Assembly (NCBI GenBank): GCA_977016875.1
Contig: CDRNST010000117.1
Span: forward strand, 868,001-932,000
Reading direction: 5' to 3'
Origin: Pavona decussata
Lineage: Eukaryota
DNA length: 64,000 nt
Shown: positions 3,948 through 63,182 of the stretch, one piece after another
Layout: every line of letters starts with the position of its first letter
How positions within the stretch are numbered: the first letter of the stretch is position 1
Translations under genes and position numbers: made by a program
Notes under the pieces: generated by a model
Told to the model about the DNA's origin: nothing
Database searches by the model: none
Seen by the model: the letters and a program-made list of their open reading frames with translations, nothing else

Positions 3948-6900
3948 TCAACCGTCCTGTGCCATGATATCTTTCTGTGGGTCCTTAACTTTGCTTATCA
4001 CCCGAGTACTACTATCAATTATCACCAAAAACATTAAATACAACTCCATAATGTACAGCAGTGTGGCCACGTATTCATTTCGTTGAGTTTGTAAGTTCCT
4101 GTAGATATTGTACACCGCAACAAATACGCTTTGAACGTTCACGACAACGAAACAGAGTGCGTAAAACACCATGAGCATCGTGCGGCTGTGATACCCGTTT
4201 AGGATGACCATAAACAGAAGCAGGCTCGTTATGCAGAGTACATTGTGAATTGCTTGCGGGAGACAGTGTCCGTTCATCAGTAGCGGCAGCCCCGCTGCAC
4301 ATAGGGATAGCTGTAAGTAAGCATTATTGCTTAGCATCAAGCATTGTTCCACGACGTTTGTGAGGTCACAGCCTGATGGCTTCCACGAGTGGCCGTTTGC
4401 AGTCCCACACAGGAAGATAAAGATACTAGTTCTTGTGAAGATCCATACGCTGTATGAAAACTCCAAGAACGTGGCATGACAGAAGGTGCTGTCATCGTAC
4501 TTTGCACATCGCTGAAACCTTTAAAAAACAGAAATATAAGTTAACGATTCATCTATCTTGAAGGGTTGTGCCTAATAGTAGAGCGTTTTCACGTTGTGTC
4601 GAAAGTAATGTCGGGCTTGTCTTGGTTTCGAATGACTTCAACACTCTTTGACTGGTTTGAAAAACTTGCGCCAATTTCAGAGCCAATTTGAAGCCAAACC
4701 AATTGTAACTTGCCCACCAGTCACGTGTATTCGCTTCGAACTCTGATTGGTTCATTGGACTGTTTACGTTTCGAAGAATACAAACAACCGGTGTAAAACG
4801 CAGGAAAATACGTGCGAGCAACGCACGATTGGTCTTGCCAGTTTTGCTTGTTATTGGTTGAGAAACTGGCACGAGTTTTTTCAACCAATACACCGAGCAC
4901 ATGGCAGCACAATCCAAGCAAACACAAAATTACTTTAGACACTCAACCAAGAACCGCTCTAAACTACTGTCTCAGAAATTGCGTAACGAAACCTCAAGAA
5001 AACGAGTTCATGTGCTTTTACACCGGTTGCTTTTAGCACAATCCAAGCAAACACAAAATTACTTTAGACACTCAACCAAGAACCGCTCTAAACTACTGTC
5101 TCAGACATTGCGTAATGAAACCTCAAGAAAACGAGTTCATGTGCTTTTAGAGTGAATAGAAGAATTGTCTAATAATGAACTCAACCGCAGGATAGTATGT
5201 CATTTCCCGGAAGGAAAATTGGAAAGTCGCTGGTTCTTTACGCTTTACAAAAAATTCCGGAAATTCCGGTTGAAATGTAAATGGCACGCGGGAGAAACGG
5301 AACTTATGACAAGGTAATTCCGTTTTTCCGGTTGGGACGTTCCGAATCGAAAGTCATGTGTCATTTACATGTCCCGCATCCTTCAGAACAGTTTCAGACA
5401 TTTGGCTTTCACATCCGTGCCAAATTGATGATTTGCATGTGACGTCATGGCGGCCATTTTGGTTGACAGAAACAATAAGATTTTCTTCTTCTGGGAGTTA
5501 ACTTCCATTTTTATGCAAACTTTGTGAACAAATTTTCTTTTGTTTTGTCCACCAACATGGTGGCGATGCAAACCACCTATATGAGCCCCAATTGAAATTA
5601 CGGTTTCTTGAGGTAAATGGAAAAAGTAACAACCGAAATTTCCGGATTTTTTTGGTAAATGGTAAACAACCACAAGGCTCTCCATGAAAAAAGGTATCGA
5701 GGGTGTAATTTTGTGATCTATGTTCACCTGATAAGAGATCCGGGATAGAAATGTCCTGTAACCAGTAGGTTTGGGAGAGGCTCCAGACCAGGGACACATA
5801 CAAACACTGCACCAGCTACAAAAAATAACCTGAGGCATCTCCTAAGACAAGAGGAAACAAATAAACTAAAGAATTAAGCCTCATACAATAAAGACAGGTT
5901 GCAATATATAGACTCTTATCACTCGGCGGCCATGTTGAGTCTCAGGAGAAAACAAAGCTTTGTTTTTGCACGGCAAGCTTCGCACTGAATTCGCGTCTGG
6001 CCGAGGCTTGCCGTGCGAAAACAAAGCTTTTTATTCCCTCGAGTCTCAACATGGCCGACGAGTGATAAGGGTCTATAAAACGACAATTATTAATTAAGCT
6101 CTTTTTTAACAAAGGCCTTAACCACTCGTTAACGTTTCTGCTCTTTTTTTTATCGTTCGATCTACTTTTTATCTTTTTATGTGAAAGTGGACACAGATTT
6201 TTAAACGAAACACGTTTTCAACAAGCTTTCTGTCGATTTCTGCTCCCCTCCCCCACCGTAGCTTTACATCCATTCTCGCTGTACACATGTAAATATTGAA
6301 AACGAACGTAAAAGTGCTACTCGCGTCGCTCGTAACGGTCATGTTTGTTACTGAGTCGAAACCGAGGCTCCAGTGGTTTTCGATCATTTAACCTTGACAG
6401 TAAGCCCAAATTCTGTAGAAAACAAACAACCTGTTCTTGCCTTTTACACATACAAGTACAATACACACAAATATCTCTGTCAAAATTAATGTTGTATACC
6501 TTAGAAAGAGTATCATTCTTAACGGAACCAGTCTGTAAAACAAACAGGAAGCCTGAACAAGAAGACTTGTCCCCATTCGTACCAAAAAGCTTGAAAACCG
6601 CCTAAGTAGCAAAAAATAAGGTGAGCGTTAGAAAAGTCAAAATACATCAAAGTACCAGGTGATGTATTTGCGCTTTGATCTTACCACAGGGTTTGGGCCA
6701 AAATCCATAGTCAATAGTATTACGAAAGATTTTTGGACAAAATACAAATATTCTTTTAAAAGCTTCCAATCGAATCAGAGTGTTCGAAAACGTACCCTGA
6801 GACACTTTTAAGCCTCCCAAAGGAACCACGTACAAAGATATAGCCCACAAAAAATTAAGTAAGGCTAAGAGTTAAACAGAAAATTCTTTGTCAGGAAGTT

Positions 6901-9900
6901 ATTTGCACCTAAAAATGACTCCCAAGGAAGGGAGTGTTACGACACGCCAGGATCCCTAGGGACATATACAAAAGAAACATGCCAACTTTCAAATTTGGTC
7001 ATTTTTGGCCAAAAACCATGGACTTACCCCATGGAAAAAAGTTGATTTTTGGACAAAGACAAGTATTCTTCTAAAACCTTCCAATCGAATCAGCGTGTCG
7101 GAAAAGTTCCCCTGAGACACTTTTTAGGCCTCCCAAGAGACAAGGGACAAAGAAATAGCCCAAAAAATGAATTCAGGGTGGGAGTTAACCAGAAAAATCT
7201 TTGTCAGGCCGTTATTTGCACTTAAAAATGATTTCCAAGGGGGTTTTACGACACGACGAGATACCTAGGGACATAAACAAGTGAAAATGATACTTTCAAA
7301 ACTTCGTCATTTCTGGCCAAAAACCATGGAAAAAAGGCAATTTTTGGACCAAATACAAGTATTTTTTTTAAAAGCTTCCAATCAAATCAGCGTGTCTGGA
7401 AACGTCCCCCGAGACACTTTATGAGCCTCCTAACGGACCAGGGGCAAAGAAATAGCTGCAAAAGATGAAGTCAGGGTGAGAGTTAAACAGAAAGGTCTTT
7501 GTCAGGGCGTTATTTGCACTTAAAAATGATTCCCAATGGAGATTTACGACACGCCGCGATCCCTAGGGACATAAACAAGTGAAAAATAATGACTGCAAAA
7601 TTTGGTCATTTCTGGCCAAAAACCATGGACAAGAAAGTCGATTTTTGGACGAAATACAAATATTCTTTTAAAAGCTTCCAATCGAATCAGTGTGTCCCAA
7701 AACGTCCCCTGAGACAACTGTTAGTCCTCCCAAGGGACTAGGGACAAAGAAATAGCCCACAAAAGGTGAAGTCAGGGTGAGAGTCAAACAGAAAATTCTT
7801 TATCAGGGCGTTATTTGCACTTAAATATGATTCCCAATGGAGATTTACGACACGCCGAGATCCCTAGGGACATAGATAAGTGAAAAATGCCGACTTCAAA
7901 ATTTGGTCATTTTTGGCCAAAAACCATGGACTTACCCCTTGGAAAAAAGTCGATTTTTGGACGAAATACAAACATTTTTTTTTAAAAGATTCTAATCGAA
8001 TCAGTGTGTCCCAAAGCGTCCCCTGAGACAATTATTAGGCCTCCCAAGGGACTAGGGACTAAGAAATAGCCCACAAAAGATGACGTCAGGGTGAGAGTCA
8101 AAGAGAAGATTCTTTGCCCGGGCGTTATTTGGACTTACAAATAACTTCCAAGGGCGTTTTTAGACTCGCAGAAATCCTTAGGGACGTAAACAAGTGAAAA
8201 GTGGCGACTTCAATACTTGTCATTTTTGGTTCAAAACCCTGGACCTGCCTTTGGGAAAAAATCAATTGCTGCACTCTCGAAAAATATAATATTCTTTAAA
8301 AAGCTTCCAATCGAATCTGTGTGTTCGTAAACTTCTCTTGAGACACATGATAGGCCTTCAAAGGGAAGTGGGGCAAAGAAATAGCCCAAGAAAGTCTGAA
8401 GTCTGGGTGAGAGCTAATTGTCACCTATACTAATTTTGGACAATTCAAGCCTGGGTTTGATTTGGTAGCCAGGTTTGTTTTGCGGCCTTAGTTTAGCCTT
8501 ATTTTCACCGTTATAGTATAAATGTCACTTTTGGTGGGTTAATTGTCAAGGTGGTTTTGTCGTTGGTTTTGCCTATTTTTTATACTAATACTATACACTC
8601 CATTTTTCTACAACTCTGGAGGGTTTGATGGTCAGGTTGGTTTTTGCTTTGTTTGAGGCTAATATATACCCTAAGACTACACACTCTAATTTTCGACAAT
8701 ACTGGAGGGTTTGGTGGCCTGTTCTGTGTTGGTGTTAGTCTAGTTTAATTTTCACCCTAATACTATATCCTTTAATTTTCGACAGTATACTGGAGGGTTT
8801 TGTGGCCAGGTTGGTTGTGTATAATATTAGAGTAAAACCTTGGCTAAACTAACGCCAAAATCAACCTGGCAAGTAAAAACCCTTCCTCGTTTTCTCGTTC
8901 GACTATTACTGAGTGGAAAAACGTTTGCAGTCAAATGGTAATCATGAACGTATTACCAACCTTAACACCAGAAAGCTCATCTTGATCAAGTCAGATAAAG
9001 TTTGTAGCCACGGTAAAAGTTGAACAAAGATTGTACAGGTCGCATTGGAAGCCGTCAAGATCACTTTGGAGATCACGTGGGGGATTGTAAATCTAAACAA
9101 TGATGGAAAAAACACTTTATAGGCCTCCCAAGGGACCAGGGACAAAGAAATAGCCCACAAAAGATGAAGTCAGGATAAGAGTTAAACAGAAAATTCTTTG
9201 TCAGGGCGTTATTTGCACTTAAAAATGATTCCCAAGGGAATTTTACTACACGCCGAGATCCCTAGGGACATAAACAAGTGAAAAATGCCGACTTCAAAAT
9301 TTGGTCTTTTTTTTCCAAAAACCATGGCAAAAAGTAGATTTTTGGACGAAATACAAATATTCTTTTAAAAGCTTCCAATCGAATCAGTGTGTCCCAAAAC
9401 ATCCCCTGAGACAATTATTAGGCCTCTCAAGGGACTAGGGACAAAGAAATAACCCACAAAAGATGAAGTCAGGGTGAGAATTAAACAGAAAATTCTTTGT
9501 CAGGGCGTTATTTGCTCTGAAAAATGATTCCCAAGGGAGTTTTACGACACGCCGAGATCCCTAGGGACATAAACAAGTAAAAAATGCCGACTTTAAAATT
9601 TTGTTATTTTTGACCAAAAACCATGGACTTACCCCTTGAAAAATAGTCGATTTTTGGACGAAAAAGAAAAATATTCTTTTAAAGCTTCTAATCGAATCAG
9701 TGTGTCCGAAATCGTCCCCCAAGGGACGAGGGTCAAAGAAGTAGCCAACACAACATGAAGTCAAGGTGAGATTTAAACAGAAAATTCTTGGCAAGAGACT
9801 TATTTACACTTAAAAATGATTCCCAAGGGAGTTTTACGACACGCCGAGATCAGTAGGGACATAAACGAGTGAAAAATGCCAACTTTAAAATTTTGTCATT

Positions 9901-12900
9901 TTTGGCCAAAAACCTTGGAAAAAAGTCGATTTTTCGACAAAAAACAAATATTCTTTTAAAAGCGTCCAATCGAATCAGTGTGTCCAAAAATGTCATCTGA
10001 GAAACATTTTAGGCCTCCCAAGGGACTAGGGGCAAAGAAATAGCCCACAAGAAATGAAGTCAGGGTACGGTGAGAGTTAAACAGAAAATTCTTTGTCAGG
10101 GCGTTACTTGCAATTTAAAATGGTTCCCAAAGGAGTTTTACGACACGCCGAGATCCCAAGGGACATAAACAAGTGAAAAATACCAACTTCAAAATTTGTT
10201 AATTTTTGGCCAAAAACCATGGACTTACCACTTGGCAAAAAGTCGGTTTTTTTGCGTTCTTTCCACAGAAAAATGATTCCTAAGGGAGTTTTACGACACG
10301 CCGCGATCCTTAGGGACATAAACAATTGAAAAATGCCGACCTCAAAATTTTGTCATTTTTGGCCAAAAACCATAGACTTACCCTTTGGAAAAATATCGAT
10401 TTTTGGACGAAATACAAATGTGTTTTTTTTTTAAGCTTTCAATCGAATCAGTGTACCCGAAAAACGTCCCGTAAGACACGTTTTAGGCCATACTAATTTT
10501 GGACAATTCATGCCCGGGTTTGATTTGGTAGCCAGGTTTGTTTCGGCCTTAGTTTAGCCTTATTTTCACCGTAATAGTATAAATGTCACTTTTGGAGGGT
10601 TAAGTGTCAGGGTGCTTTTGGCGTGTTTTTTCCCATTTTCACTAAACACTTCATTTTTCGACAATTCAGGAGGGTTTGGTGGTCACGTTGGTTTTGGCTT
10701 TATTTGAGCCTAATTTTCACTCCAAGACTACACACTCTAATTTTCGACAGTAGTGGAGGGTTTGGTGGCCTGTTTGATGTTGGTGTTAGTCTAGCCTAAT
10801 TTCACCCTAATACTATATGCTCTAATTTTCGACAATACTGGAGGGTTTTGTGGCCAGGTTGCTTGTGTATAGTATTAGAGTAAAAACTTGGCTAAACTAA
10901 CGCCAAAACCAAGCTGGCAAGTGAAAACCCTTCCTCGTTTTCTCGTTCGACTATTGTTGAGGGGAAAAACGACTGCAGTCAAATGGTAATCATGAACGTA
11001 TTACCAACCTTAATACCAGAAAGCTCGTCCTGATCAGGTCAGGCAAAGTTTGTAACCACGGTAAAAGTTGAACAAAGATTGTACAGGTCGCATTGGAAGC
11101 CGTCAAGATCACTTTGGAGGTCACGTGCGGGACTGTAAATCTAAATAATGATGGAGAGAATAAGGCAAAACTCTCATAAACAACTCACTACAGGAAAGGT
11201 GTCTGGATCAACCACGAGAACTGGTCACTAAATGAAAGAAGTCTGAAATATAATGGAGACTGTCTCCTGGGCCCAGTTGTTCAAAGTCCGATCGAGCTAA
11301 TCCTGGGTTAACGTGAAGTTTGATTCGAGTTTAATTACTAATCAGTAATTATTTTTCCACCTCGGTTAACTTTTAATCAGCGATTAGCTTTAATCGCGGC
11401 TTTCGAAAAGCTGGGCCCTAAAAATTCATGGTTCAAATTGCAGCAGTAACTGGTTTAGGCCTTTTGTGGCTTGTGTTTGAGTAGCTTTCTCGGCGGGTCA
11501 CACAAAAAAGAACGGAAAAAGCCGTCTGTTATCGCAAACTAGAACAACAACGTTGGATTGTTGAAATTGTCTGCTGAGCTTTAACTTGAAGGATATTATA
11601 ATAGATCATCATTAGAATGTGCATATCTTTTGAGTTTGAAATACAGCAGAAACTTGATTAAAGTTGAATAGAGTCTTATCGGTCCCATTTGGTGGTCACG
11701 TGACAGCTCCTGACGTGCCAGGAGTTTTGTACCTATAAGCGATCGGGAGTGCTCAAAAACTGCGATCCAGCGATCGGTCCCTTTAACAGAAGTAAAAGTT
11801 TCAGAGAATGTCCCAAATTAGAGGTTCCTATGTTAATAATTTTTTTTATGGAATTAACGTCGTTCATGAGAGGTGGTTGACCAAAAGTTTCGACCTTACA
11901 GATTAAGAGGAGATTTAACCCTTTAACCCTTTAACCCTTTAAGCTTTAACGGTGATCAGTATGAAAGTTCTCCTTGTAATATTAATGCTTGTTTTAAGAA
12001 TTGAGGATATGATCACCCTAGGTGAATTTTCTTGATAGTTAATAACTTCTCCTCAGTACTTTTTCAAGAAAAGTATGGGGACAAGGCAGGAGAATTTGTT
12101 CTTTGATATTAGGGGTAAAGGGTTAAGGGCTAAGAGAACCAATAGCACACGATGTGATCACGAAGCGTATACTTTTATTAAAGAGTTGCCGTGATACGTA
12201 TCAGAATCTTTGAGTGGTCGCTTACGAGAGCTTAAAAACAAAAGGAAAAGACCAGTTGGTAATTCCCAAAAGTGGTCGCGGACGCTTATGGGAGCGGTCG
12301 CTTACGAGAGGTTTTGATTACAGAGTTTAGGTGACAATTCAAACGGGGTTTCACAATGGTGGTCGTAACTAGAGCTGGTTGCTTACGAGAGTGGTAGCAA
12401 GGAGAGCTTCGACTGTATCATTATTTTTGAGCTAAAAGTAAGCTTTGCTCAAAGATTTCTTACCTTATATGGTTAACAGCGTAACGCAACATAGAATCCA
12501 GCCAGCCAAACACGACTAACTGCACAAGATAGTGAGGAAAGGTGATGAATATCACGCGATTTACTTCGGTAACGACGAAAGTGTAAACTCTGTAAACTCT
12601 ATGAAACAAACACAGCGACTGCTGTTATACAAGCATTTCACAATCTCCAATTTCTCTATACGTAAGCTAGATAGGAAGCTGAGTTGGGTAGAAGAGTCGT
12701 ACAGTGCTCCCAATTTTCTTCTAATCGTATCATCAAGGTTTCCACACCCAATCTGTCTTGGTATCTAACTCCATATTGCTCATCCATTCATTTATATTTC
12801 TCGTTTTCCTCCTCTTAAAATAAAAACGTTCTCGCCACCCTCTCCCCTTTTTTTCTCCTGGAAACCCCGCTGTCTCGTGCCCTCACTCTTCCTTCCCAAC

Positions 12901-15047
12901 TCCAATGTCCACTTATGTTCAGAAAGGCACCTAGCCTTGAATTTGGGTACTTTATGTAAGACAGACCTTTTTGTCATTTTCATATGACTTCATGTTTGAC
13001 AGAATTACTTGTGTTTTTTGGTAAGAATTTAGGTTAGGGGGCACTTTGTGATGTCTATCATACAGTTCATGCATTTCATTTGTCACGCGACCCATGCGAC
13101 AAACTCTTAATATTAATACGTTTTATTTGTTGAATGAGAGGCAAGTGTACGCCGTACTCATTTTAGCAACTTACGTTTTCGTTGAGGCATTTTAGTTCAA
13201 TTCATTTGTCAATCTCGTACCCAGAGTCCTCAGGCACTTTGGCCAGCGGTTGGGCGCCAGGAGAGACTCTGGGGCAATGGAATTTTATTACCGCAGGATT
13301 TCTGCGGTAAAAAAAATGAAGCCGTTACGGATCTTATACAGAGCAGCCAATCAAAAAAATTTAAATTTTTTCGAATTCTCCATAGTCTCTCCTCGGGCTC
13401 ACCTGCTGACCAAAAAGCCTGAGGACTCTGGGTACAAGATTGTTCATTTTTTGGTGATGGAACACAACGACAGGTCAACAACGTTATTTGTGGCGTTGTG
13501 TGACAGATGACAGTCTGCACTTCTCCCCAATCGGGGGTTACTCCTCTATATAATCTTTATAGGTACGTGCGCCAGTTGGCGTGTTTTTTTAGCCGTTTTG
13601 GTCTGCAGTTGGGTATAGACCTCAACAAGTAAAAGAGCAAGGCTGATTTCACTGTTATAATTAGGGAAATATATTGATTCCACTAAATTTTCCTAAACGT
13701 GTAATAGCCCTTGCTCTTGTTTTTCTTTTTGTCACACTTACTTTAAGATGCTTTTTAAAATTACGAAACCCGACCCAGGTCTGAAAAAATGTACCGGTAA
13801 ATTTCATAGTTTTGGTCTGAAATAAGGTCAGGGTTTCTACAACGAGCCGCACATCCTCTGCCAAAAATTCGAGGTCAGTACCTCCCTGGGAACTTTCCCC
13901 GCGTTTCGGTATCTAAGGAATGACTCACCTTAACGCCAGGCAGGCTTTGGACAACAGGTAATCAATAGGAAGGATTACATAAGATGATGGAGGCAAAGGA
14001 ACCATGTAAGATATGAATACCTGCAAACAACAATGCGTAGGATGATATTATGTTACGCAGTCTTTCTGCTTGGACAGGAGCATTCGTCTTATAGCAGAGA
14101 ACAAACTTAAATGGTTCGGCGTCAACTTCAAAATATTCCAGATATTGTCATTAACTGAGCAACGGAGCATGAATTTCGCCATCCTCTGTGCTTGGTCACA
14201 CACGGGTTACTACACTTTAACACATCAACGTAAGCGAAGACACTCTTTCGGTTAATTACCCTTGTTGGTTCACAAAATCACTGATCCAATATGCGAGCCC
14301 ATATGCGAAGAAAATTTAGGGCGCCTTCCCCCCTCCCCCCCCCCCCCCCCCCTTACAAGTGGATTGCTTAGCATTTAGTTTACAAAATGTAGCTTTTGCT
14401 TACGGGACATTGTACTCCCTTCCAAGGGCTAAGGGAGCGAATACCGCAAAAAGAAAACAAGCTTTCCTAAAACTTGAGCTTTTGCAGAAAAAAAAAATTG
14501 TTCACAGCGTAACAAAGCAAAGAAATACCTTTCAACCTATTGAAAAAATTCATAGAAAGCTTTTGGTTATGAAACAAATCCTATTTGGGGGCAGAAAAAT
14601 GTCCAACCATCCCCCCTCCCCCTCCCCCTACAAAAAGCATAAATAACATGGTCTACTCCGGATAATAGCACAACGATCACCGTTACGCTTATAAAATACC
14701 CAAAATAAACTGAATAGGTTCTCCGACCAGCCAACTTTAATCATGCCAATACTAAGATATTGCGATTGAAATCGATGAAAGAAGATATCCCTGCTAATAC
14801 CCTCACAGCCGAATATAAGCTAAAATTTATCGACCTGCTGATAAAGTCTGTCTCGAAATGTGATCAAGGGAATTAAAATACAGAAAGTACTGGCTCAAAG
14901 AAGAAGACTGCAAGAACTTACCGTGAGGAAGCAAGTGTTAATGTTTGGTATACCTAGAATGATCCATGACAGAACTGAGATAAAGAGAAACACAATAAAA
15001 CGGCAAAAGACGACCACAACGAAAGACGTGATTTTCTTCCACGCCAT
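3948..15047 (-). CDS. Uncharacterised multi-pass membrane protein, 7-8 coding exons (~423 aa, or ~467 aa if both duplicated exons are used)
   Basis: Exons: 15047-14922 (ATG in GTAATGG; MAWKKITSFVVVVF...; phase 0), 14020-13929, 12598-12464, 11140-11009 and/or 9092-8961, 6601-6500, 5841-5728, 4518-3948 (stop). Each internal exon has an AG acceptor after a pyrimidine tract and a GT donor (GTAAGT, GTGAGT, GTAAGA, GTTGGT, GTATAC, GTGAAC). All join into one open frame, and each exon sits between repeat elements, apart from the duplicated pair. No family recognised. Confidence 0.62.
4579..4961. mobile_element. CCAAT-rich MITE (same family as 2705-2931)
   Basis: Termini tagagcgttttc ... gaaccgctcta with ccaat/attgg repeats. 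Confidence 0.7.
4906..5149. repeat. Direct tandem duplication of ~115 bp
   Basis: 4906-5020 and 5035-5149 are near-identical (agcacaatcc...gtgctttta). Confidence 0.9.
5231..5672. mobile_element. MITE with a nested second MITE (~5425-5580)
   Basis: Outer inverted termini tggtt.tttac...ttccggaaattccggtt / aaccgaaatttccgga...gtaaacaacca. The inner element carries ggcggccattttgg...ccaacatgg motifs and is related to 50612-50748. Confidence 0.65.
5907..6077. mobile_element. Fold-back MITE with TA ends
   Basis: Near-perfect palindrome tatagactcttatcactcg...cgagtgataagggtctata. Confidence 0.8.
6640..8420. repeat. Tandem satellite array A, ~6 units of ~300-315 bp
   Basis: The anchor motif ccaatcgaatcag (or a close variant) recurs near 6767, 7081, 7379, 7679, 7994 and 8307. 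The motifs gggacaaagaaatagccc and ccctagggacat recur in each unit. Confidence 0.92.
8427..9108. repeat. Duplicated block, copy 1 (subrepeats, hairpin and a candidate exon)
   Basis: Aligns along its length with 10490-11155. Confidence 0.9.
9110..10489. repeat. Tandem satellite array B, ~4.5 units, same family as array A
   Basis: Anchor motif near 9376, 9688, 9966 and 10439. One unit is internally deleted near 10255. Confidence 0.92.
10490..11155. repeat. Duplicated block, copy 2
   Basis: Aligns with 8427-9108. Confidence 0.9.
11915..12126. mobile_element. piggyBac-like MITE (TTAA-CCC...GGG-TTAA)
   Basis: Termini ttaacccttta / taaagggttaa. The interior matches copies at ~45680-45875 and 46134-46352. 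Confidence 0.75.
12190..12417. mobile_element. Tc1/mariner-type non-autonomous element end with internal ggtcgcttacgagag repeats
   Basis: Ends in gcttcgactgta (TA-CAGTCGAA terminus). The short motif is repeated about four times. Confidence 0.55.
13210..13442. mobile_element. MITE with ~25-bp TIRs and a probable 9-bp TSD (Mutator-like)
   Basis: TIRs caatctcgtacccagagtcctcagg / cctgaggactctgggtacaagattg. The flanks ttcatttgt and ttcattttt match at 8 of 9 positions. Confidence 0.8.
13525..13890. mobile_element. MITE with GGGGG(T)TACTCC / AGTACC termini
   Basis: Degenerate TIRs. A related element lies at ~28047-28330. Confidence 0.5.
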
Positions 15048-18843: not shown

Positions 18844-18953
18844 TTCCCGGATCCACACGTCACGAAAAGGAATGATTTGTGGCAGAAGCTACCGAATTTA
18901 TGCCTGAAACAAGTGTTCAAAATAGCGAAAGTCCGGCTTCAAGTTTGATAACC

Positions 18954-21900
18954 ATGGCGAATTTCCAAATACCTCCTCCTGACATACTCGAGCTAAACGA
19001 TGGTTCGACAGCGTCCAATTGGCGAACTTGGGTTTCTGCTTGGAATAATTACAGGCTGGCTACGAAGCTAGATAAAGAGGAAGAAGCACGCCAAGTAGCA
19101 ACACTTTTGGCCGTAATTGGAAAAGAAGCGAACAAGGTGTTTCGTACTTTCACGTGGGCCTCGCCAGACGACGCGAAGAAAATCGCTGCGGTTGTAAGCA
19201 AGTTCGAAGAGTATTGCATTCCCAGGGAAAACACTATTTACGAACGTTTTCTTTTCTTTACGCGGGATCAGCGGGAATCTGAAACTGTTGATCAATATTT
19301 GACGGAGCTTCGCCAAATTGCAGCAAATTGTGATTTCGAGTCAATCACACCCGATCAGCTTCTCCGGGATCGACTGGTGACAGGTACCAAAACTGCCAAG
19401 GTACGTGAAAATTTGCTCAAAGAGAAGAAATTGACTCTTGAGAAAGCTATAGATATCGCTCGTGCCGCCGAGAGTACGGCTGTTCAAATGAAAGTTATGT
19501 CTGCTGAGTCTGGATTGAGTGCTGTGAAAGAGAAAGAGAAAGAGCAGTCAGAAAATGTCCCATCTGTCAGCAGTGGCTGGATCAAGGACTGCAGATTCTG
19601 TGGTAGGAACCACGAAAGACGTAGCTGCCCTGCCTTTGGCCAGATTTGTGCATATTGTAAAAAAAGGAATCATTTTGTTGTCAAGTGCCCAGCAAAAAGC
19701 AAGGTGTCTTCTGTCCAAGAGCGATTTTATTTAAGTGCTGCAGGTGTCGGAAACGGAGGTCGTGAGATGGTTACCCTCACTGTATCAAAAGAGTCTAACC
19801 CCCTTTCAGGTCACGATGTAAGCTTCTTGATGGACACGGGGGCTGAATGCAATCTTTTGCCCTTGGATGTGTACAAGAAGGTGACTGGCGATCTGCACTT
19901 GAATTTCCTCAATGCACGCGGCAAGTCAATCCTGGTTTTAGCTAATGGAGATGAGCAACCCATCGAGGGCAAAGCCACAGTGTATGTCTCCCGCAAAGGA
20001 AACGCACACAAAATTGAAGTCAATGTAGTCAGGGGCCATGGGTATGAGCCCATACTGTCTAAGCAGACAATGCTGGAAATGAACTTGATAAAGATTCTAG
20101 ACAGTGACCGAGATCCACGCGTCAATGTACTGAAGTCCGACACAGAGCCATTGCTGGAAGAGTATGACGATGTATTTGAAGGCCTTGGAAAGTTGGACGG
20201 ACAGTACCACATTGTAACAGACGAGTCCATCAGACCTGTAGTGCATCCTCCGCGGCGTTTACCTGTTGCGATGACTGAGCGAGTTCAGCGGAAACTCGGA
20301 GAAATGGTAGCTGCTAACATAATCGAACAAGTCGACCATCCTACTGACTGGGTATCCAGTATGCTAGTGGTGACCAAGCCATCCACCGAAGCTGAGGGGG
20401 AAACCAAGTTACGCATCTGTTTGGATCCCAGGGATCTGAATCTTGCCATAAAGCGTGAACACTTCCCGATGCCGACAATTGAAGAGATTGCAACTAGGCT
20501 GAATGGGGCAAAATTGTTCAGTGTTTTTGATGCCAGTAATGGTTTCTGGCAAGTGGAACTTGACGATGAGTCTAGTAGTTTAACAACGTTTAACACCCCG
20601 TTCGGGCGCTACCGTTGGAAGCGAATGCCATTCGGCATCAATAGTGCACCTGAAGTTTGGCAGCGCAAAATGCGAGAGCACATTGAGGGGCTTAAAGGAG
20701 TAGAAGTAATTGCAGATGATTTTGTGATCGTTGGATTTGGCAACACACCTGCTGAGTGGCAGACAGACCATGACCGGAATGTGCGTGCCTTCCTAGACCG
20801 TTGCCGTGAGAGAAACCTGAAGTTGAACAAGAAGAAAGCCCGACTGAGACAGCAAGAAGTTCCCTTCATCGGACACATTCTAACCCGTGAGGGACTGAAA
20901 CCAGATCCACACAAGGTTGAGGCAATCGTGGGGATGCCAGACCCGACTGATGTCCAGTCCTTACGTAGGTTCCTGGGCATGGTGAACTACTTGGCAAAGT
21001 TCCTCCCACGTCTATCCGAAGAAACAGAAGTTTTGAGAAAACTCACTGAAAAGGATGCTGAGTGGTGTTGGCTGCAAAGTCATACTGATGCTGTGGCCCA
21101 TGTCAAGGAAATGATTGTATCTGCACCTGTACTTGCCTACTATGACGTGAATAAGCCAGTGGTCATTCAATGCGATGCTTCCCAAAGTGGACTTGGTGCA
21201 GCTCTGCTACAGGAGGAGCGCCCAGTGGCTTACAGCTCTCGTGTGATGACTCAAACGGAACAAAACTATGCGCAGATTGAAAAAGAGCTACTCGCCATAG
21301 TTTATGCTTGTGAGAAATTTGATCAGTACATTTTTGGAAGGAGCAATGTAATTGTGCAGTCAGACCACAAGCCGTTGGAAACCATATTCAAGAAGCCAAT
21401 CCACAGTTCGCCAAAACGCCTCCAACGCATGCGTCTCCGCTTACAGAACTATGACATCCAAGTGGTATACAAGAAAGGAGAGACCATGTTCTTGGCTGAC
21501 ACATTAAGTCGCGCTTACTTGGAAAAGGAACCAGTGAGTCAGACCCAGGACAGTGACGTCCGTTCTGTCAGAGAACGACTGTTCGCTTTTGAGTTAGAGC
21601 AGATTAAAAATGGTGAAGATCTAAGTGTCTCCCCCACTCGCCTGGAAGAGCTGCGCAAGGAGACTGCTCAGGATGAAGAATTACAGACCCTGTCTGATGT
21701 TATTCATGAGGGTTGGCCAGAGACCCTGTCAGAAGCTCACAAATATGACCGGCGTCGGAGGCAAGTAATTGAGCTGTATTGGAACAGCCGTGATGAGCTG
21801 ACCATAGAAGATGGATTGGTATACAAGGGTCATCGCCTTGTGATACCATTTAAAGAGCGTTCTGGTGTTGTAAAGAGCCTGCATGAATCACATATTGGAA

Positions 21901-22955
21901 TAGAAGGAACATTGCGTCGTGCCCGCGACATTGTTTACTGGCCTGGAATCACAGCCCAGCTCAAAGATCACTTGTCAAGGTGTGGAATCTGTAACCGTTA
22001 TCGGCCCGAACAATGTAAAGAGCCTTTAAAGCCTCATGATGTGCCTAATTTGCCATGGCAGAAAGTTGGTGTTGATCTTTTCGTGCTGGACGGGCAATCA
22101 TTTTTGATAGCCGTTGATTACTACTCTGGCTATTTTGAAGTGCAAGATATGAGTAGCACCACCAGCAACCGTGTTATCACCATTCTAAAGGCGTGGTTTT
22201 CCAGGCATGGTATTCCTGTGACTCTCATCAGTGACAATGGGCCCCCCTTCAACAGTGAAGATTTCCAGACCTTCAGTAAGGAATGGGATTTTCACCACGT
22301 CACATCAAGCCCTTATCACGCACAAAGTAATGGTCGTGTGGAAAATGCAGTTAAGACTTGCAAGTCATTGCTGACCAAAGCCCGAGCTGATAAGCGTGAT
22401 CCTCTGCTGGCGTTACTTGAGTGGCGCAACACACCAACTGAGGGTATGAATGCTTCTCCTGTTCAGCTACTATATGGTAGGCGAACACGCACCCGTCTCC
22501 CAGTAGCCAAGCAATTGTTAACTCCACAGGTGATAACTGATGTCCCCGAAAAGATCAAGATTAGAAAGCAGAAGCAGAAATACTACTATGATCGTCACTC
22601 ACATGAACTGCCAAAATTGCTTGACGGTGATGCCATTAGAATGCGATTGCCACGCGAGAAGGAATGGTCACTGGGGCGCGTCATTGGAGAGGAGGGGACC
22701 CGTTCCTACTTGGTTGAAGTGAACGGAAAGCATTATCGACGGAACCGCAAATGGCTCAGAGCAACACCCGAGGAGTTACCGGAGTCAGTGGAGACAAACC
22801 TCGACATGACCGATCCAATGGAACTGGTAGAGTCAAGTCCTGCTGAGCCGCCACAGGCAATGATACCATCACCAGTGGTTTCTGGGCCTCATACTGAAGG
22901 TCGTCCAGTGCGGGACCGCCGCCCCCCAGTGTGGTTAAAAGATTATGAGTGCTGA
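18954..22955 (+). CDS. Gag-Pol polyprotein (gag with two zinc knuckles, protease, RT, RNase H, integrase)
   Basis: Motifs in order: CRFCGRNHERRSC and CAYCKKRNHFVVKC; MDTGA; RT with IADD; CDAS...NYAQIEKE...SDHKPL; HHCC then VGVD/SDNG/NGRVE. The PR-RT-RH-IN order is Gypsy. The ATG at 18954 has ACCATGG context; the ATG at 18900 is an alternative start. Confidence 0.96.
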   Translation: MANFQIPPPDILELNDGSTASNWRTWVSAWNNYRLATKLDKEEEARQVATLLAVIGKEANKVFRTFTWASPDDAKKIAAVVSKFEEYCIPRENTIYERFLFFTRDQRESETVDQYLTELRQIAANCDFESITPDQLLRDRLVTGTKTAKVRENLLKEKKLTLEKAIDIARAAESTAVQMKVMSAESGLSAVKEKEKEQSENVPSVSSGWIKDCRFCGRNHERRSCPAFGQICAYCKKRNHFVVKCPAKSKVSSVQERFYLSAAGVGNGGREMVTLTVSKESNPLSGHDVSFLMDTGAECNLLPLDVYKKVTGDLHLNFLNARGKSILVLANGDEQPIEGKATVYVSRKGNAHKIEVNVVRGHGYEPILSKQTMLEMNLIKILDSDRDPRVNVLKSDTEPLLEEYDDVFEGLGKLDGQYHIVTDESIRPVVHPPRRLPVAMTERVQRKLGEMVAANIIEQVDHPTDWVSSMLVVTKPSTEAEGETKLRICLDPRDLNLAIKREHFPMPTIEEIATRLNGAKLFSVFDASNGFWQVELDDESSSLTTFNTPFGRYRWKRMPFGINSAPEVWQRKMREHIEGLKGVEVIADDFVIVGFGNTPAEWQTDHDRNVRAFLDRCRERNLKLNKKKARLRQQEVPFIGHILTREGLKPDPHKVEAIVGMPDPTDVQSLRRFLGMVNYLAKFLPRLSEETEVLRKLTEKDAEWCWLQSHTDAVAHVKEMIVSAPVLAYYDVNKPVVIQCDASQSGLGAALLQEERPVAYSSRVMTQTEQNYAQIEKELLAIVYACEKFDQYIFGRSNVIVQSDHKPLETIFKKPIHSSPKRLQRMRLRLQNYDIQVVYKKGETMFLADTLSRAYLEKEPVSQTQDSDVRSVRERLFAFELEQIKNGEDLSVSPTRLEELRKETAQDEELQTLSDVIHEGWPETLSEAHKYDRRRRQVIELYWNSRDELTIEDGLVYKGHRLVIPFKERSGVVKSLHESHIGIEGTLRRARDIVYWPGITAQLKDHLSRCGICNRYRPEQCKEPLKPHDVPNLPWQKVGVDLFVLDGQSFLIAVDYYSGYFEVQDMSSTTSNRVITILKAWFSRHGIPVTLISDNGPPFNSEDFQTFSKEWDFHHVTSSPYHAQSNGRVENAVKTCKSLLTKARADKRDPLLALLEWRNTPTEGMNASPVQLLYGRRTRTRLPVAKQLLTPQVITDVPEKIKIRKQKQKYYYDRHSHELPKLLDGDAIRMRLPREKEWSLGRVIGEEGTRSYLVEVNGKHYRRNRKWLRATPEELPESVETNLDMTDPMELVESSPAEPPQAMIPSPVVSGPHTEGRPVRDRRPPVWLKDYEC

Positions 22956-24160: not shown

Positions 24161-25426
24161 TCACAACAATCCAGTATTATACAGCATGGCGCCCAGAGTC
24201 CATCCCAAATCAAATCCTTTAAGCTTATTACCCACTTGTATCATTTTATCGCCAGGTAGTCCATAGCCCTTTGTGAGCAGCTCATAGATGAAATTGCTCC
24301 GAAAGCAGTCGTACTTGGCTTGCGGGTTACTTTTAACCTCTTCGTACTTTTTAGAACAAAACTCTCGGGAACTATTTTCAAACATGGCTACCGACAGGGG
24401 CTTCACGCAGTGAAAACATAACAGTTCGGTGTCATGGGCGGTGTAAAATATCCCCGAGAAAGCAAAGAATTCTCCGCGTAGACTAGGCTGGTCGTAAAAC
24501 GGGCAGTCGGGAGATTTGCAGAAAAAGAATTTCGCAATGATCGATCGGCATTTTGTGACTGAAGGTTTCCCTACAACGGTGACGTTTCTACCTTTGATGA
24601 ATGATATCGGCTGTTTAAAGCCTTTGTGGTGGCAAGGACTTTTCAAAATACCATTTGTTAAACTCCCATGAGAGAGAATTTCGATGGTAAGGTATCTTTG
24701 GTAAGCCAGGTCCAAGCCATAGCCCAGATAACTTCTAGCAAATAGACAATTTTTCTTATCACCTATTGTCAAAGGGACAGAATCATTCCCGGTGCTCTCA
24801 AACGTATTAGCATGGGACGCACCTCCTAAATCCAATATTCCGTAGGTTGGGTGAGGTGTCCTAGGACGAAAAAGTCCCTTTAAAAAATTCACAGTTATCC
24901 AACTATATACCCCCTCAAACTCACCCGAAATAATTTTTGCGTCCTTTGGATCAAACTTAAACGGACATTTGTTTTTGTCAGTAAAGAGTGTTTTAACTTT
25001 GTCAAGTATGGCATTAGCCTGGTCGTTTCTCAAACGTCGCATTCCTCCCGTGGCCAGAAAGAAAATAGGAGTGGAGTCATGTTTGTGCTCTGGCACGGTC
25101 TTTATCGCTGACTTAAGCAATGGCATCAGATATTCTTCAATTGCGACTGAGTTTCCTGCCAAACTGGCGATTCCAGGCTTAACTTTACTGAAAGAGGGTT
25201 CCATCTGTTCGATATCTTCCACTTCTAACGGGGAATTCGAAGTCTTCCCATTGATTTTGTAGATTTGCATCTTAGTTTTGCTGGCACCTACATCAAATAC
25301 AATAGTGTATCTAGTTGAGCCTGAGCCCGCATTCGCCTTGTCTTCCAGCTGCGCATGACGACTGAGACAGGTGTGCAGTTTTGTTGCGCTGATCATGAGC
25401 AGTAGGAACAAACAGTAGTGAGCCAT
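24161..25426 (-). CDS. Secreted NTPDase/apyrase, GDA1/CD39 family, single coding exon (421 aa)
   Basis: Signal-peptide-like N-terminus. Apyrase conserved regions: IVFDVGASKT (ACR1), LATGGMR (ACR2), ISGEFEGVYSWITVN (ACR3), DLGGAS (ACR4), WTLG (ACR5). No C-terminal TM helix. Splice acceptor at 25441/2 and a candidate 5'-UTR donor AG|GTAAGT near 26723. Confidence 0.93.
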   Translation of the reverse strand: MAHYCLFLLLMISATKLHTCLSRHAQLEDKANAGSGSTRYTIVFDVGASKTKMQIYKINGKTSNSPLEVEDIEQMEPSFSKVKPGIASLAGNSVAIEEYLMPLLKSAIKTVPEHKHDSTPIFFLATGGMRRLRNDQANAILDKVKTLFTDKNKCPFKFDPKDAKIISGEFEGVYSWITVNFLKGLFRPRTPHPTYGILDLGGASHANTFESTGNDSVPLTIGDKKNCLFARSYLGYGLDLAYQRYLTIEILSHGSLTNGILKSPCHHKGFKQPISFIKGRNVTVVGKPSVTKCRSIIAKFFFCKSPDCPFYDQPSLRGEFFAFSGIFYTAHDTELLCFHCVKPLSVAMFENSSREFCSKKYEEVKSNPQAKYDCFRSNFIYELLTKGYGLPGDKMIQVGNKLKGFDLGWTLGAMLYNTGLL

Positions 25427-25689: not shown

Positions 25690-25842
25690 NNNNNNNNNNN
25701 NNNNNNNNNNNNNNNNNNNNNNNNNNNNNNNNNNNNNNNNNNNNNNNNNNNNNNNNNNNNNNNNNNNNNNNNNNNNNNNNNNNNNNNNNNNNNNNNNNNN
25801 NNNNNNNNNNNNNNNNNNNNNNNNNNNNNNNNNNNNNNNNNN
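25690..25842. other. Assembly gap
   Basis: Run of N. Confidence 1.
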
Positions 25843-37724: not shown

Positions 37725-40700
37725 CCTTGCTAAGATCTGCTTTTCCCGGATAGTCATAAACCGCACAAAAATACTTCGGTATTAGTAGGCACCGTCCTTA
37801 AACAGGCTTCATGGCATGCAGTTCAACAGGCTCAGCTTAGCTCTAGTTTCAAGAAGATATAGTCCCTTCTAAACTTATCCTGATAAATTGAAAACGCATC
37901 TTTTTTCTTGGTTAGTGTGGACGGAGCCTTATCCACTCTGGAGAGCGTTTACAAAAAGATGCGGTGGTCGCAGTGGCTCGTATTACTATAGGAAACGAGA
38001 ATTTGTTCAACCTCGATTCTCTTCAGTGACATATGGAAAACACTCACTTCGTTACCCAGGGCCTAAACTGTGGAATGATCTCGCTCCTAGAATAAGATAT
38101 CAACCCTCTCTGAAGGAATTTAAAAGAGTCATACGTAATCAGGACCTTACTGCCCTAGCTGCAAAGGTCAGCAGCCATCGAGGCTGCAACCTATGCCGAG
38201 AATGACTGTGGTTTACATGATCTTTTTGCGATTGATTGATGTAGAAATTTTTAATATTTTAATATGGTTTTACAATGTAAATTTTAATTCTTTTTTAGCT
38301 AGATTTAGTTAGGCGTCCACTATTAGTAGAGGGGACTTCTTCCCTCAGCAACATTTTTTNNNNNNNNNNNNNNNNNNNNNNNNNNNNNNNNNNNNNNNNN
38401 NNNNNNNNNNNNNNNNNNNNNNNNNNNNNNNNNNNNNNNNNNNNNNNNNNNNNNNNNNNNNNNNNNNNNNNNNNNNNNNNNNNNNNNNNNNNNNNNNNNN
38501 NNNNNNNNNNNNNNNNNNNNNNNNNNNNNNNNNNTTTAGTGTGAACGGAAGGCCAAACCGGAGAAAAAGTATCTAATTTATGCGGCCGGATTCAGTAGTG
38601 TAGATGGGGCCTATGTCGACTGGTAGCGGACACTGTCGGACCGAACGTCATATTTCCGAGAGAAATAAAGAATTGTATAAATATTTAAGTACGCATCAAA
38701 AAAGTAGGACTAACCTTTCTCCATTGTTTCCACGTTCTACGTAATAAAATCCTATTGTATAACGATTCTGCTGCCCGATCTCTCTCTTCCTTCATTTGTC
38801 TCATGTGCTCCAACCAGGGAAAAAAACAACAGGTCAATAAAACTCTGTTGCGATGGAATGTGGCACGTGACATGTTCTCGTGCGTCATCTCTACTAGACG
38901 TCTCCATGGTAACAAGCCAAACTTGACGAGCAAAGTGGTGGCGTAGTGCTGCGTTGCCATGGTAATTTGGTGGCGATTGTGCTGCAGTTGTCGCTGTTTT
39001 TCAAGTTCACGCTGTGAAAGCAAAAGAGTGAAAAAACGTTGGTTGATGGAAAAAATGTTACAAGAATGGATACTCTTGTATCTAATCTATCAACAGTATC
39101 AATCCAATTGGTAGATTACTACATTGGTGTCAAAACAAAGTTGGATAGGTTATGATGTTTAGACAAAATAAATCTTATTTCAAACTTGACAGTAAAAGAA
39201 GTTAAAATCAGAATAATGTATGAGGGAGGCTGTACGACCGCAAACGAGAAAGGAAGGGGAACCAATCCAATTTTTGGAGGGGGGGGGGGAGGGGGTTGGG
39301 CACTTTAATTCGCCACCAAATGCTTTGTGTTAAGTTTCTGTCTCTCGTTGTCAGTATATTTAATTTGTTTCGTTATTTTGCTCCTGCAAAAAAAGCTTTG
39401 CACAATTAATTTTTTTGGTATTTGCTCATAGATTTAATGACCCGTCCTTTACAGGATTGATTGACAAATTGCAAGTAGAAATGAAGCGCTGGAACGATAT
39501 CAAGGGCACGACGGTTCCTTACCTCTCTGGCGACTCGTTTCTCCTCTTTTTTCTTGCGCAAAGCTTCTTGTTTTTCCGCCAACAATTCTGCTTCTTTTCG
39601 TTCTTGTTCCTTTTTGAGAAATGCCTGTCGCGAAGTGAATAATAGTATTTGTCAAAAAAGTGAAGATATCAAGAACGAAAGCTAACACGAACACGCACGA
39701 AACACGCGGGAACACGCATATGCGCAGAACATGCTTTGCTTGTCATTGAACTATTCCTGCGAGAAAATATAGACTGCTTGTAGTGTTGGAGAAATCCAGC
39801 TACTGGAAGTTGTGATGTGCGTGACAAATCGGTCACGCTTTCGTGACAGTGACTAAGCAAGAAAGACTAATCATCTCAGCCATTCAACTTTGCTAGTATA
39901 TTACGAAACATATGAGCACATAAAAATGATTCTCGTACCAGTTTTTCTTCCTCTGCTTTTTTCTTTTTCTCCTCCAGGGTTTTCTTTCGGAGCATGCGCT
40001 GCTGAGCACGTTCCTCCATGGCTTTACAGACAAGAACAGCAGGCGTCAAGTTAGTGAAGTGACAGAGAGGAACAACAACAACCCACAAACAAACAAAAAT
40101 GACAGTGAATGATGTAGTTGCACGCGGCAAGAGTAAACGTGGACAATGTTCTAGGCCAATGACCGCAGTGACACTTAAATCAAGTATAGTATAGACAAGC
40201 TTTTTAAGGGCGTTTCCCTGTGTATCTCAGAGGCTCAGTTTACTTCGGCTGCTGTAAATATACCTCCCTTAAAAATGTTTTGGGCCAAAATGTGCGGCAA
40301 AGATCAGTGTTCAGGGAAACACTATACTAAATCAGAAAAAGGAAATTTTTGCAAAAAGCTACAGTAGTAAAAGGGGCGGTTTGGGTTTTGGTAGACGCCA
40401 GTCAATCAGATAGACTGCAAGCAGTCCCTTTCTGGTCAGTTGAGAGGGTGCGCTCACAGCGCAGCGAGACTGGAGCGAGGAGAAATAAACGACAACGCCT
40501 CTCCCCAAGCCCCCCTCCGCTCGTTTGCTCCAGTTTTTCGCGCTCGGCTATTTCGCGCGACCTTTCGACTATCCAGAAAGGGACTGCTTGCAGTCTATCG
40601 ATCAGATTACAGGGATCGTACTATGAGATCAAAATGGGCTCCAAACCTAGACGACATAAAACTTACCAAGATGAAGGGGTTTAGTGGTGGGCTTCTGTGA

Positions 40701-61929: not shown

Positions 61930-63182
61930 TCACTTGATGTCACACAGCAGTGCCACTCCCCTGAGAATCCAATGATTAGGACTCTGTACAGTCTTGAGCC
62001 AGAGAGGGGTGATGTAAGTCAGGTCTGTACGCTGAGGCTTCTTGTACACAGGGCACTGGTAAAGTCTCGGGTCCTTGGGTGCGGTGGAGTTGACTGCGTA
62101 CACGTGTACCACAGGCAACAGAGTGAAGAGGACCTTAGGCTGGGGCTCGATCAGTTTGCAGCCACGGCGATCCCATCCAGCGCCATCTAGGTACAAACCA
62201 TAGATGTAGACACCCTCCTGCGATTACAGTAATAAACACTTGTGTTACAACACAGACATAAACTGGCACAGTGCATTAACGGTGGAGAAATAGACAACCA
62301 TCTCGATCTTGGATCTTGTAAAGGTGTTTTTTTAGTGTGACTGTTACAAAGTCAAAAATAAAATAATTAAAAGTAAAGTAAAGTAAAGTAAAGTGAAGTA
62401 AAGTGAAGTGAAGTGAAGTGAAGTGAAGTGAAGTGAAGCGAAGCGACGTGAAGTGAAGTGAAGTGAAGTGAAGTGAAGTGAAGTGAAGTGAAGCGAAGCG
62501 ACGTGAAGTGAAGTGAAGTGAAGTGAAGCGAAGCGACGTGAAGTGAAGTAAAGTGAAGTGAAGTGAAGTGAAGTGAAGCGAAGCGACGTGAAGTGAAGTG
62601 AAGTGAAGTGAAGCGAAGTGAAGTGAAGTGAAGCGAAGTGAAGTGAAGTGAAGTGAAGTGAAGTGAAGTGAAGTGAAGTGAAGCGAAGCGACGTGAAGTG
62701 AAGTGAAGTGAAGTGAAGTGAAGTGAAGTAATTTATTTAATGTCAATTATAACAAAGGGGGGTGCTAGTATACACCTAGCGTATCAAAACAAACGCAAGC
62801 TTCCGTATTTCTAATATTCAGTCTCCTCACTAAGGCGAGTCCCCACTTCCAATGGAACTAGATTTAGATACGCTCTCACCCTTGTAAGTGCAAGCCCATA
62901 TAAAATGGAAAACGTGTAAGTTCATCTCACCGCTGGTGGGGAGTTAATGTCCTCTTTCATAGCTCTTATGACGTCATTATGCAGCACCACAGAGTCTAGG
63001 GCCCAGCCCTTGTGCGCACGCGTCACTTCCTGTCTCATGGCAGTCAGGAAACCCTGAGGGTTGAAGAAACCTGTCATCCAGAATACGTTCGGCCGGCCAT
63101 TGAAAATCCAGTTGGAGAACTGGTTGTTTCTTTCCAGAAACTCTGTGAACCAGAAACCAAGGGTGGACGACTCCCACGAGAT
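61930..63182 (-). CDS. DNAH8: Axonemal outer-arm dynein heavy chain (DNAH5/DNAH8 group), last two exons; the gene extends beyond the window
   Basis: Exons 63182-62931 ([12 protein letters not shown]...[19 protein letters not shown]) and 62217-61930 ([16 protein letters not shown]...[14 protein letters not shown]). DNAH5 versus DNAH8 orthology cannot be settled by eye. Confidence 0.93.
62370..62730. repeat. (AAGTG)n pentanucleotide microsatellite with AAGCG/ACGTG variants
   Basis: Directly visible in the dynein intron. Confidence 0.97.

Follow-up and report, generated by a model that had tools for sequence, protein, structure and literature searches.

Genes in which tandemly duplicated exons of the same phase are used alternatively or mutually exclusively are known from Dscam, from tropomyosin and from ion channels with exon pairs. 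Here we describe a multi-exon gene for a very hydrophobic protein in Pavona decussata that carries a candidate exon pair of this kind. It lies on the minus strand of a stretch of 64,000 nucleotides (nt), positions 868,001 to 932,000 of contig CDRNST010000117.1 in assembly GCA_977016875.1. We call this whole stretch the window, and positions are numbered within it. The nearest described counterparts of the gene are predicted proteins of other corals. The entries S. pistillata LOC111328684, O. faveolata LOC110041456 and P. damicornis pdam_00020170, together with those from Porites evermanni, Montipora capricornis and M. foliosa, are collinear with it across all seven exon units, match it in junction positions and phases, and likewise have no Pfam domain. 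The locus is very probably the ortholog of a single-copy gene that is so far confined to stony corals by name, and it very probably encodes an intact membrane protein of about ten passes. Judging by the sequence comparisons, the orthogroup is one that is already predicted but wholly uncharacterised, restricted to stony corals by its named members, and the window adds an ortholog to it. A literature search on the three locus names found no paper. What is new in this genome is the duplication of exon 4; unlike its coral relatives, the Pavona gene has a second, 92%-identical copy of that exon.

The exons are listed in Table 1. Every intron has GT..AG borders, the acceptors are pyrimidine-rich, and intron lengths run from 658 to 2359 nt. 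The preliminary description of this DNA, made from the sequence alone, quoted five junction peptides (LALR, NHIR, LVLR, LFLR and SLIR), and all five are found on the minus strand in stop-free segments. Its list of phase-2 exons of 135, 132, 102 and 114 nt is right as far as it goes, but it omits the 92-nt exon e2, in which the phase changes from 0 to 2, and the 132-nt exon is present twice. At the borders of e3 to e6, an Arg codon is split so that each exon begins with one nucleotide of it and closes with two (AG). These middle exons hold about one hydrophobic helix each and are multiples of 3 nt in length, so the frame is kept when one of them is skipped or duplicated. The spliced coding sequence (CDS) with either copy of exon 4 is 1272 nt (423 amino acids, aa), and with both copies it is 1404 nt (467 aa), in agreement with the frame of about 420–470 aa predicted beforehand. 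A script check found one terminal stop, and no other, in each spliced version. With a 17-aa window, the Kyte-Doolittle profile has one peak per exon in e1 to e6 (maximum 1.5–2.95) and four or five peaks in e7. The joined CDS served for the frame check, the hydropathy profile and the ratio of nonsynonymous to synonymous substitution rates (dN/dS), while family and sequence searches used single exons.

Table 1. Exons of the gene and repeat features within it, in window positions.
Feature	Position	Strand	Length	Phase	Remarks
e1	15047-14922	minus	126 nt	0 to 0	ATG at 15047; first hydrophobic helix
e2	14020-13929	minus	92 nt	0 to 2	ends ..LALR
e3	12598-12464	minus	135 nt	2-2	ends ..NHIR
e4a	11140-11009	minus	132 nt	2-2	upstream copy of duplicated exon 4
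e4b	9092-8961	minus	132 nt	2-2	downstream copy of exon 4; frame and splice sites intact
e5	6601-6500	minus	102 nt	2-2	ends ..LFLR; cassette homolog in Orbicella
e6	5841-5728	minus	114 nt	2-2	ends ..SLIR; homolog skipped in Stylophora X2 and Montipora X4
e7	4518-3948	minus	571 nt (CDS only)	2 to end	stop at 3948-3950; conserved C-terminal bundle
Duplicated block, copy A	10541-11140				e4a and following intron
Duplicated block, copy B	8480-9092				e4b and about 480 nt of following intron
Satellite array	9123-10404				about 300-nt units; most of the 4a-4b intron, to about 30 nt upstream of the 4b acceptor
Satellite array	6728-8413				same satellite, 314-nt units; 4b-5 intron

Comparison with relatives shows that the gene is intact and subject to purifying selection. 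Exon e7 alone finds 26 proteins with 57–78% identity over its full length. One of the transcript-derived proteins (P0013) is contiguous across the predicted junctions, reading ..NHIR/FT.. and ..GSLIR/FQRC.. (the slash marks the junction), as are P0004 and P0018. A search with P0013 leads to full-length proteins from Stylophora pistillata, Pocillopora damicornis, Orbicella faveolata, Porites evermanni, Montipora capricornis and M. foliosa, all labelled "uncharacterized", "hypothetical" or "unnamed". When ten members of the orthogroup were compared with the window by tblastn, all exons were matched in collinear order, with identities to the coral homologs of 45–74% in e1 and 62–69% in the last exon. 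The most direct comparison is with a coral metatranscriptome contig from the JGI metagenome collection (L004), which carries an uninterrupted open reading frame (ORF) of 423 codons. This contig also reads through the NHIR/F junction, and it derives from spliced RNA, because introns are absent from it where the window and a coral genomic contig (L009) have them. The window model aligns to this ORF with no gaps, 300 of 423 positions being identical (71%), at a dS of 0.71 and a dN/dS of 0.23. Exon by exon, the ratio is 0.17 in e1, 0.27 in e2, 0.24 in e3, 0.41 in e4a, 0.18 in e5, 0.21 in e6 and 0.21 in e7, thus below 0.42 in each.

The genomic contig L009 comes from a more distant, Orbicella-like coral. 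Its exons measure 114, 123, 102 and 114 nt, each of phase 2-2 and with homologous junctions. The conserved exon phase and the dN/dS below 1 that were proposed as checks of the gene are both found. The introns of L009 are short, about 100–530 nt (about 0.1–0.5 kb, compared to 0.66–2.4 kb in Pavona). The exon pattern goes far beyond chance. That the exons are chance open frames and no gene exists is extremely improbable; the one point in its favor is the absent RNA coverage discussed below, and the collinear homology, the purifying selection and the conserved intron phases all contradict it. The proposal of a genuine multi-exon gene with a very hydrophobic product is thus borne out by the gap-free match to a relative's cDNA. 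Since frame, phase and purifying selection are conserved, the combination that had been named as fatal to the gene, no spliced reads and no conservation of frame in relatives, is not what is found.

The range of the gene is narrow. A HMMER profile of ten members run against 1.84 billion representative sequences recovered 42 proteins at an expectation value (E) up to 1e-3. The majority are partial sequences of this gene, and all of those that carry a name are scleractinian, as expected if the gene is lineage-specific in the way first proposed. The more distant profile hits are unnamed proteins (P0037, P0039 and P0040), and a search with P0037 for homologs in non-scleractinian cnidarians returned no named protein. 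Within the 602-Mb Pavona assembly, exon 7 has only one strong match, and the gene is therefore single-copy and not a member of an expanded receptor family. This speaks against the diversified receptor family suggested in the preliminary description. It also bears on a related idea, that the protein belongs to a repertoire of seven-transmembrane chemoreceptors, resembling either G-protein-coupled or gustatory receptors, whose members vary by cassette. Such a protein would be expected to show a profile match, seven helices and an expanded gene family; none of these was found, and we consider this identity very unlikely. The gene is also not hidden, as had been thought, in that the RefSeq annotation of other corals already predicts its orthologs.

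The relatives show that the symmetric exons behave as cassettes. Gaps in the homolog alignment coincide exactly with the exon borders in the window. Outside one block, O. faveolata isoform X2 (P0031) matches the ORF of an Orbicella contig (L005) at 374 of 375 positions; that block, absent from X2 and present in L005, is a clean 34 aa (102 nt) corresponding to e5. The block corresponding to e6 is missing from Stylophora X2 (P0027) and Montipora X4 (P0035) and present in P0013 and P0034. In Porites, a transcript protein (P0033) has two tandem e5-like units, and no such unit occurs in the annotated protein of P. evermanni (P0032). Residue changes at the junctions fit the splitting of a codon in phase 2, with V/K versus V/F in Stylophora and C versus W in Porites. 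Therefore, of the three kinds of cassette behavior that had been anticipated, skipping and duplication are seen across the relatives and this genome, but no shuffling was seen in the homologs compared. Some of the cassette forms were predicted by annotation pipelines and could be minor or lack a function.

The second exon 4 arose by a tandem duplication of about 2.05 kb, now about 10% diverged, which doubled the exon and has a satellite array between the copies. The two blocks listed in Table 1 are 89% identical and are spaced 2048 nt apart, and the genome has no further full copy. Their intronic parts agree at 89.5% of positions and their exonic parts at 92.4%. The related corals (L004 and L009) carry one exon 4, so the duplication is specific to this lineage. 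Between e4a and e4b, 10 of 132 nt differ, five synonymously and five nonsynonymously, giving a dN/dS of 0.30; a binomial test against neutrality, worked by hand, gives p of about 0.07, and the changes are too few to judge constraint. An assembly artefact was considered as the source of the second copy and is unlikely, given the 89–92% identity and the distinct upstream contexts of the two copies.

Several repeats occupy the introns. Pieces of the satellite of about 300–314 nt are extremely abundant in coral metatranscriptome contigs, with summed depths of 10^3 to 10^4 and many rearranged joints, and it is therefore a transcribed, genome-wide repeat. Within the duplicated intron block there is an 86-nt tandem unit (8552-8819 and 10641-10861), longer arrays of which occur on other contigs, for example at G000:C331:2166055-2168041, with 70–76% identity. 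The e6-e7 intron contains two copies of a 129-nt unit at 4906-5149 that are 98% identical.

The family of the protein was not recognised at the outset, and this still holds. Pfam gives no match, at E up to 10, for any exon, for the transcript-derived homologs or for ten full-length members, so the full-length coral proteins named above are also without a domain. The ESM Atlas queried with e7 and with a second ORF of the genome (L002, described below) has no usable neighbor, and a sequence profile search of the PDB gives 0 hits at E 10. The structure is more informative at one end than at the other. AlphaFold2 folds the full-length ortholog P0034 with a mean predicted local distance difference test score (pLDDT) of 68.8 and a well-defined C-terminal bundle at residues 236–410. 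Exon e7 of the window, folded alone, gives five long helices with a pLDDT of 77.3 and a predicted template modelling score of 0.72. This last exon is the most conserved part of the protein. Its helices contain many invariant polar residues (N, Q, H, S, T, D, R and Y), in motifs such as ..NGHC..QT.HN.., ..LNGYH.RT.., ..MN.QS.. and ..NLQT.. of the homolog alignment, and there are invariant cysteines too.

From the invariant polar residues of these C-terminal helices, a polar route through the membrane can be proposed. The functional core would then be the five-helix transmembrane bundle of the last exon, acting in the manner of a channel or transporter, with the conserved cysteines before and between the core helices placed in loops. 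The N-terminal half, with its one helix per exon, would serve as a variable scaffold, and splicing would adjust how many helices it has. We regard this division into a polar core and a splicing-tuned scaffold as a tentative possibility that is on balance doubtful.

A number of points weigh against this picture. No family, motif or significant structural match supports a role as channel or transporter; Foldseek searches of the PDB with the P0034 and e7 models gave nothing below E 0.1. The N-terminal half of the P0034 model is poor, with pLDDT of 42–72. If the cassettes are true membrane spans, skipping one would invert the conserved core, and some of the predicted isoforms may then be splicing noise. 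As for RNA of this species, four runs of RNA or putative RNA (X1, X3, X5 and X6) were compared, as contigs, with window positions 5600-11599. There, e4a, e4b and e5 have a depth of zero and no exon junctions. A 619-nt contig, from a run of uncertain type, spans the donor of e4b unspliced. The contigs of the four runs covered only intronic satellites and other repeats, and the share of about 13% (0.13) of the sampled words that these runs contained was traced to repeats. Genes of weak expression are missed by contigs from small or mixed RNA libraries, and zero coverage of this kind is only an absence of evidence.

These RNA data raise the alternative that the Pavona locus is decaying or silent, a relic that is no longer expressed and keeps an intact frame only by the chance of having fallen silent recently. 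Besides the zero coverage of exons in the four contig sets, the swelling of the introns by satellites fits such decay, as do four residues that are invariant in ten other corals and differ here (N to I, W to G, L to S and T to A). However, two of these four residues are also found in the closest relative (P0011), and a weakly expressed gene escapes assembled contigs in any case. All eight exons are open, the splice sites are all canonical, there are zero indels relative to L004 over 423 aa, and every exon has a dN/dS of 0.17–0.41 at a dS of 0.71. We therefore consider the silent copy quite unlikely and retain the reading of the locus as an intact ortholog under selection.

Taken conservatively, the result is an ordinary one, a correct gene model for an orphan membrane protein of corals, one already predicted in other species by annotation pipelines. 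A well-conserved, single-copy gene of narrow lineage that is under selection and has no known domain offers a clean starting point for functional studies in corals. The gene is also a clear natural example of an architecture of one helix per exon in the same phase, with both exon skipping and tandem duplication seen across species. The exon-4 duplication beside its satellite array is datable and lineage-specific, which makes it useful for studying the origin of new alternative exons.

The remainder of the window, which is about 39% guanine plus cytosine (GC) overall, contains other elements. An uninterrupted Gag-Pol-type ORF of 1358 aa at 18879-22955, on the plus strand, has RVT_1, RNase H, integrase zinc-binding and rve domains, and GC reaches 45–48% across it. 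It is apparently an intact copy of a long terminal repeat retrotransposon of the Ty3/gypsy-like type. On the minus strand at 24161-25426 there is a single-exon ORF of 421 aa that contains a complete GDA1/CD39 nucleoside-phosphatase domain (Pfam E 1e-72); it probably represents an apyrase/NTPDase gene without introns, or a retrocopy. Runs of N lie at 25690-25842, about 260 nt beyond that ORF, and at 38360-38534. Near the end of the window, a minisatellite with a 15-nt period (62276-62746, minus strand) can be read as an ORF of 156 aa in which ..HFTSL.. units recur, and the GC skew rises at that end.

Among proteins of known structure, the best likeness is a weak structural one to the otopetrins (PF03189; PDB 6nf4, 6nf6, 6o84 and 8ug4), in which the C-terminal bundle resembles one half-domain. 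This likeness lies in the noise range for helical bundles, so the resemblance in fold is only a lead. It allows the idea that the bundle is a divergent otopetrin-like half-domain and the protein a coral-restricted proton or ion channel. However, a genome-wide scan with PF03189 at E 10 misses this gene and finds a true otopetrin on another contig, and comparison of the family profile with that otopetrin by hhalign gives a probability of 0.05%. The length and helix count are also unlike those of the 12-helix otopetrins. The protein has about 423 aa compared to about 600, does not appear to be made of two six-helix halves, and shows no sequence or profile similarity. The idea is accordingly improbable, and membership in the otopetrin family as such was rejected on the Pfam scan and the profile comparison. 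The bona fide otopetrin of this genome is an intron-less open frame of 616 aa (L011:1441-3291, minus strand, which is G000:C145; PF03189, E 8e-39).

A bolder version would have the gene found an undescribed class of ion or proton channels or transporters in stony corals. This class would combine an otopetrin-like five-helix core with an N-terminal helix count set by cassettes and by recurrent exon duplications, of exon 4 here and of exon 5 in Porites. We give this proposal, too, little chance of being right. If it were true, the class could bear on coral-specific physiology, for example the control of pH during calcification. One paper discusses otopetrin proton channels for the calcifying cells of sea urchins (PMC13000164), which is context for this speculative reading only.

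Two other groups of proteins were compared with the predicted core. The TMD0 five-helix bundle of ABCC transporters (PDB 9li5, 5twv and 8rq4) resembles it, but the window protein has no ABC core and no sequence similarity to them, and the resemblance is probably generic packing. The other is an unnamed family of 550–590 aa (P0064, P0066 and P0067). Its last ~100 residues, three helices ending in ..IIRKL.KP.., resemble the end of exon 7, with E of about 3e-4 in the profile search and 80% in hhalign. Its N-terminal two thirds are unrelated to the window protein, and introns and Pfam domains are both absent from it. The same genome encodes a member of that family, an intron-less ORF of 576 aa at L002:1477-3207 on the minus strand (G000:C122). 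In gene structure, the likeness is to the textbook genes with duplicated exons. As in those genes, e4a and e4b are adjacent, equal in length (both 132 nt), of the same phase (2-2) and homologous (92% identical), with their AG and GT splice sites present and intact. A difference is that inclusion of both copies also keeps the frame here, 132 being a multiple of 3.
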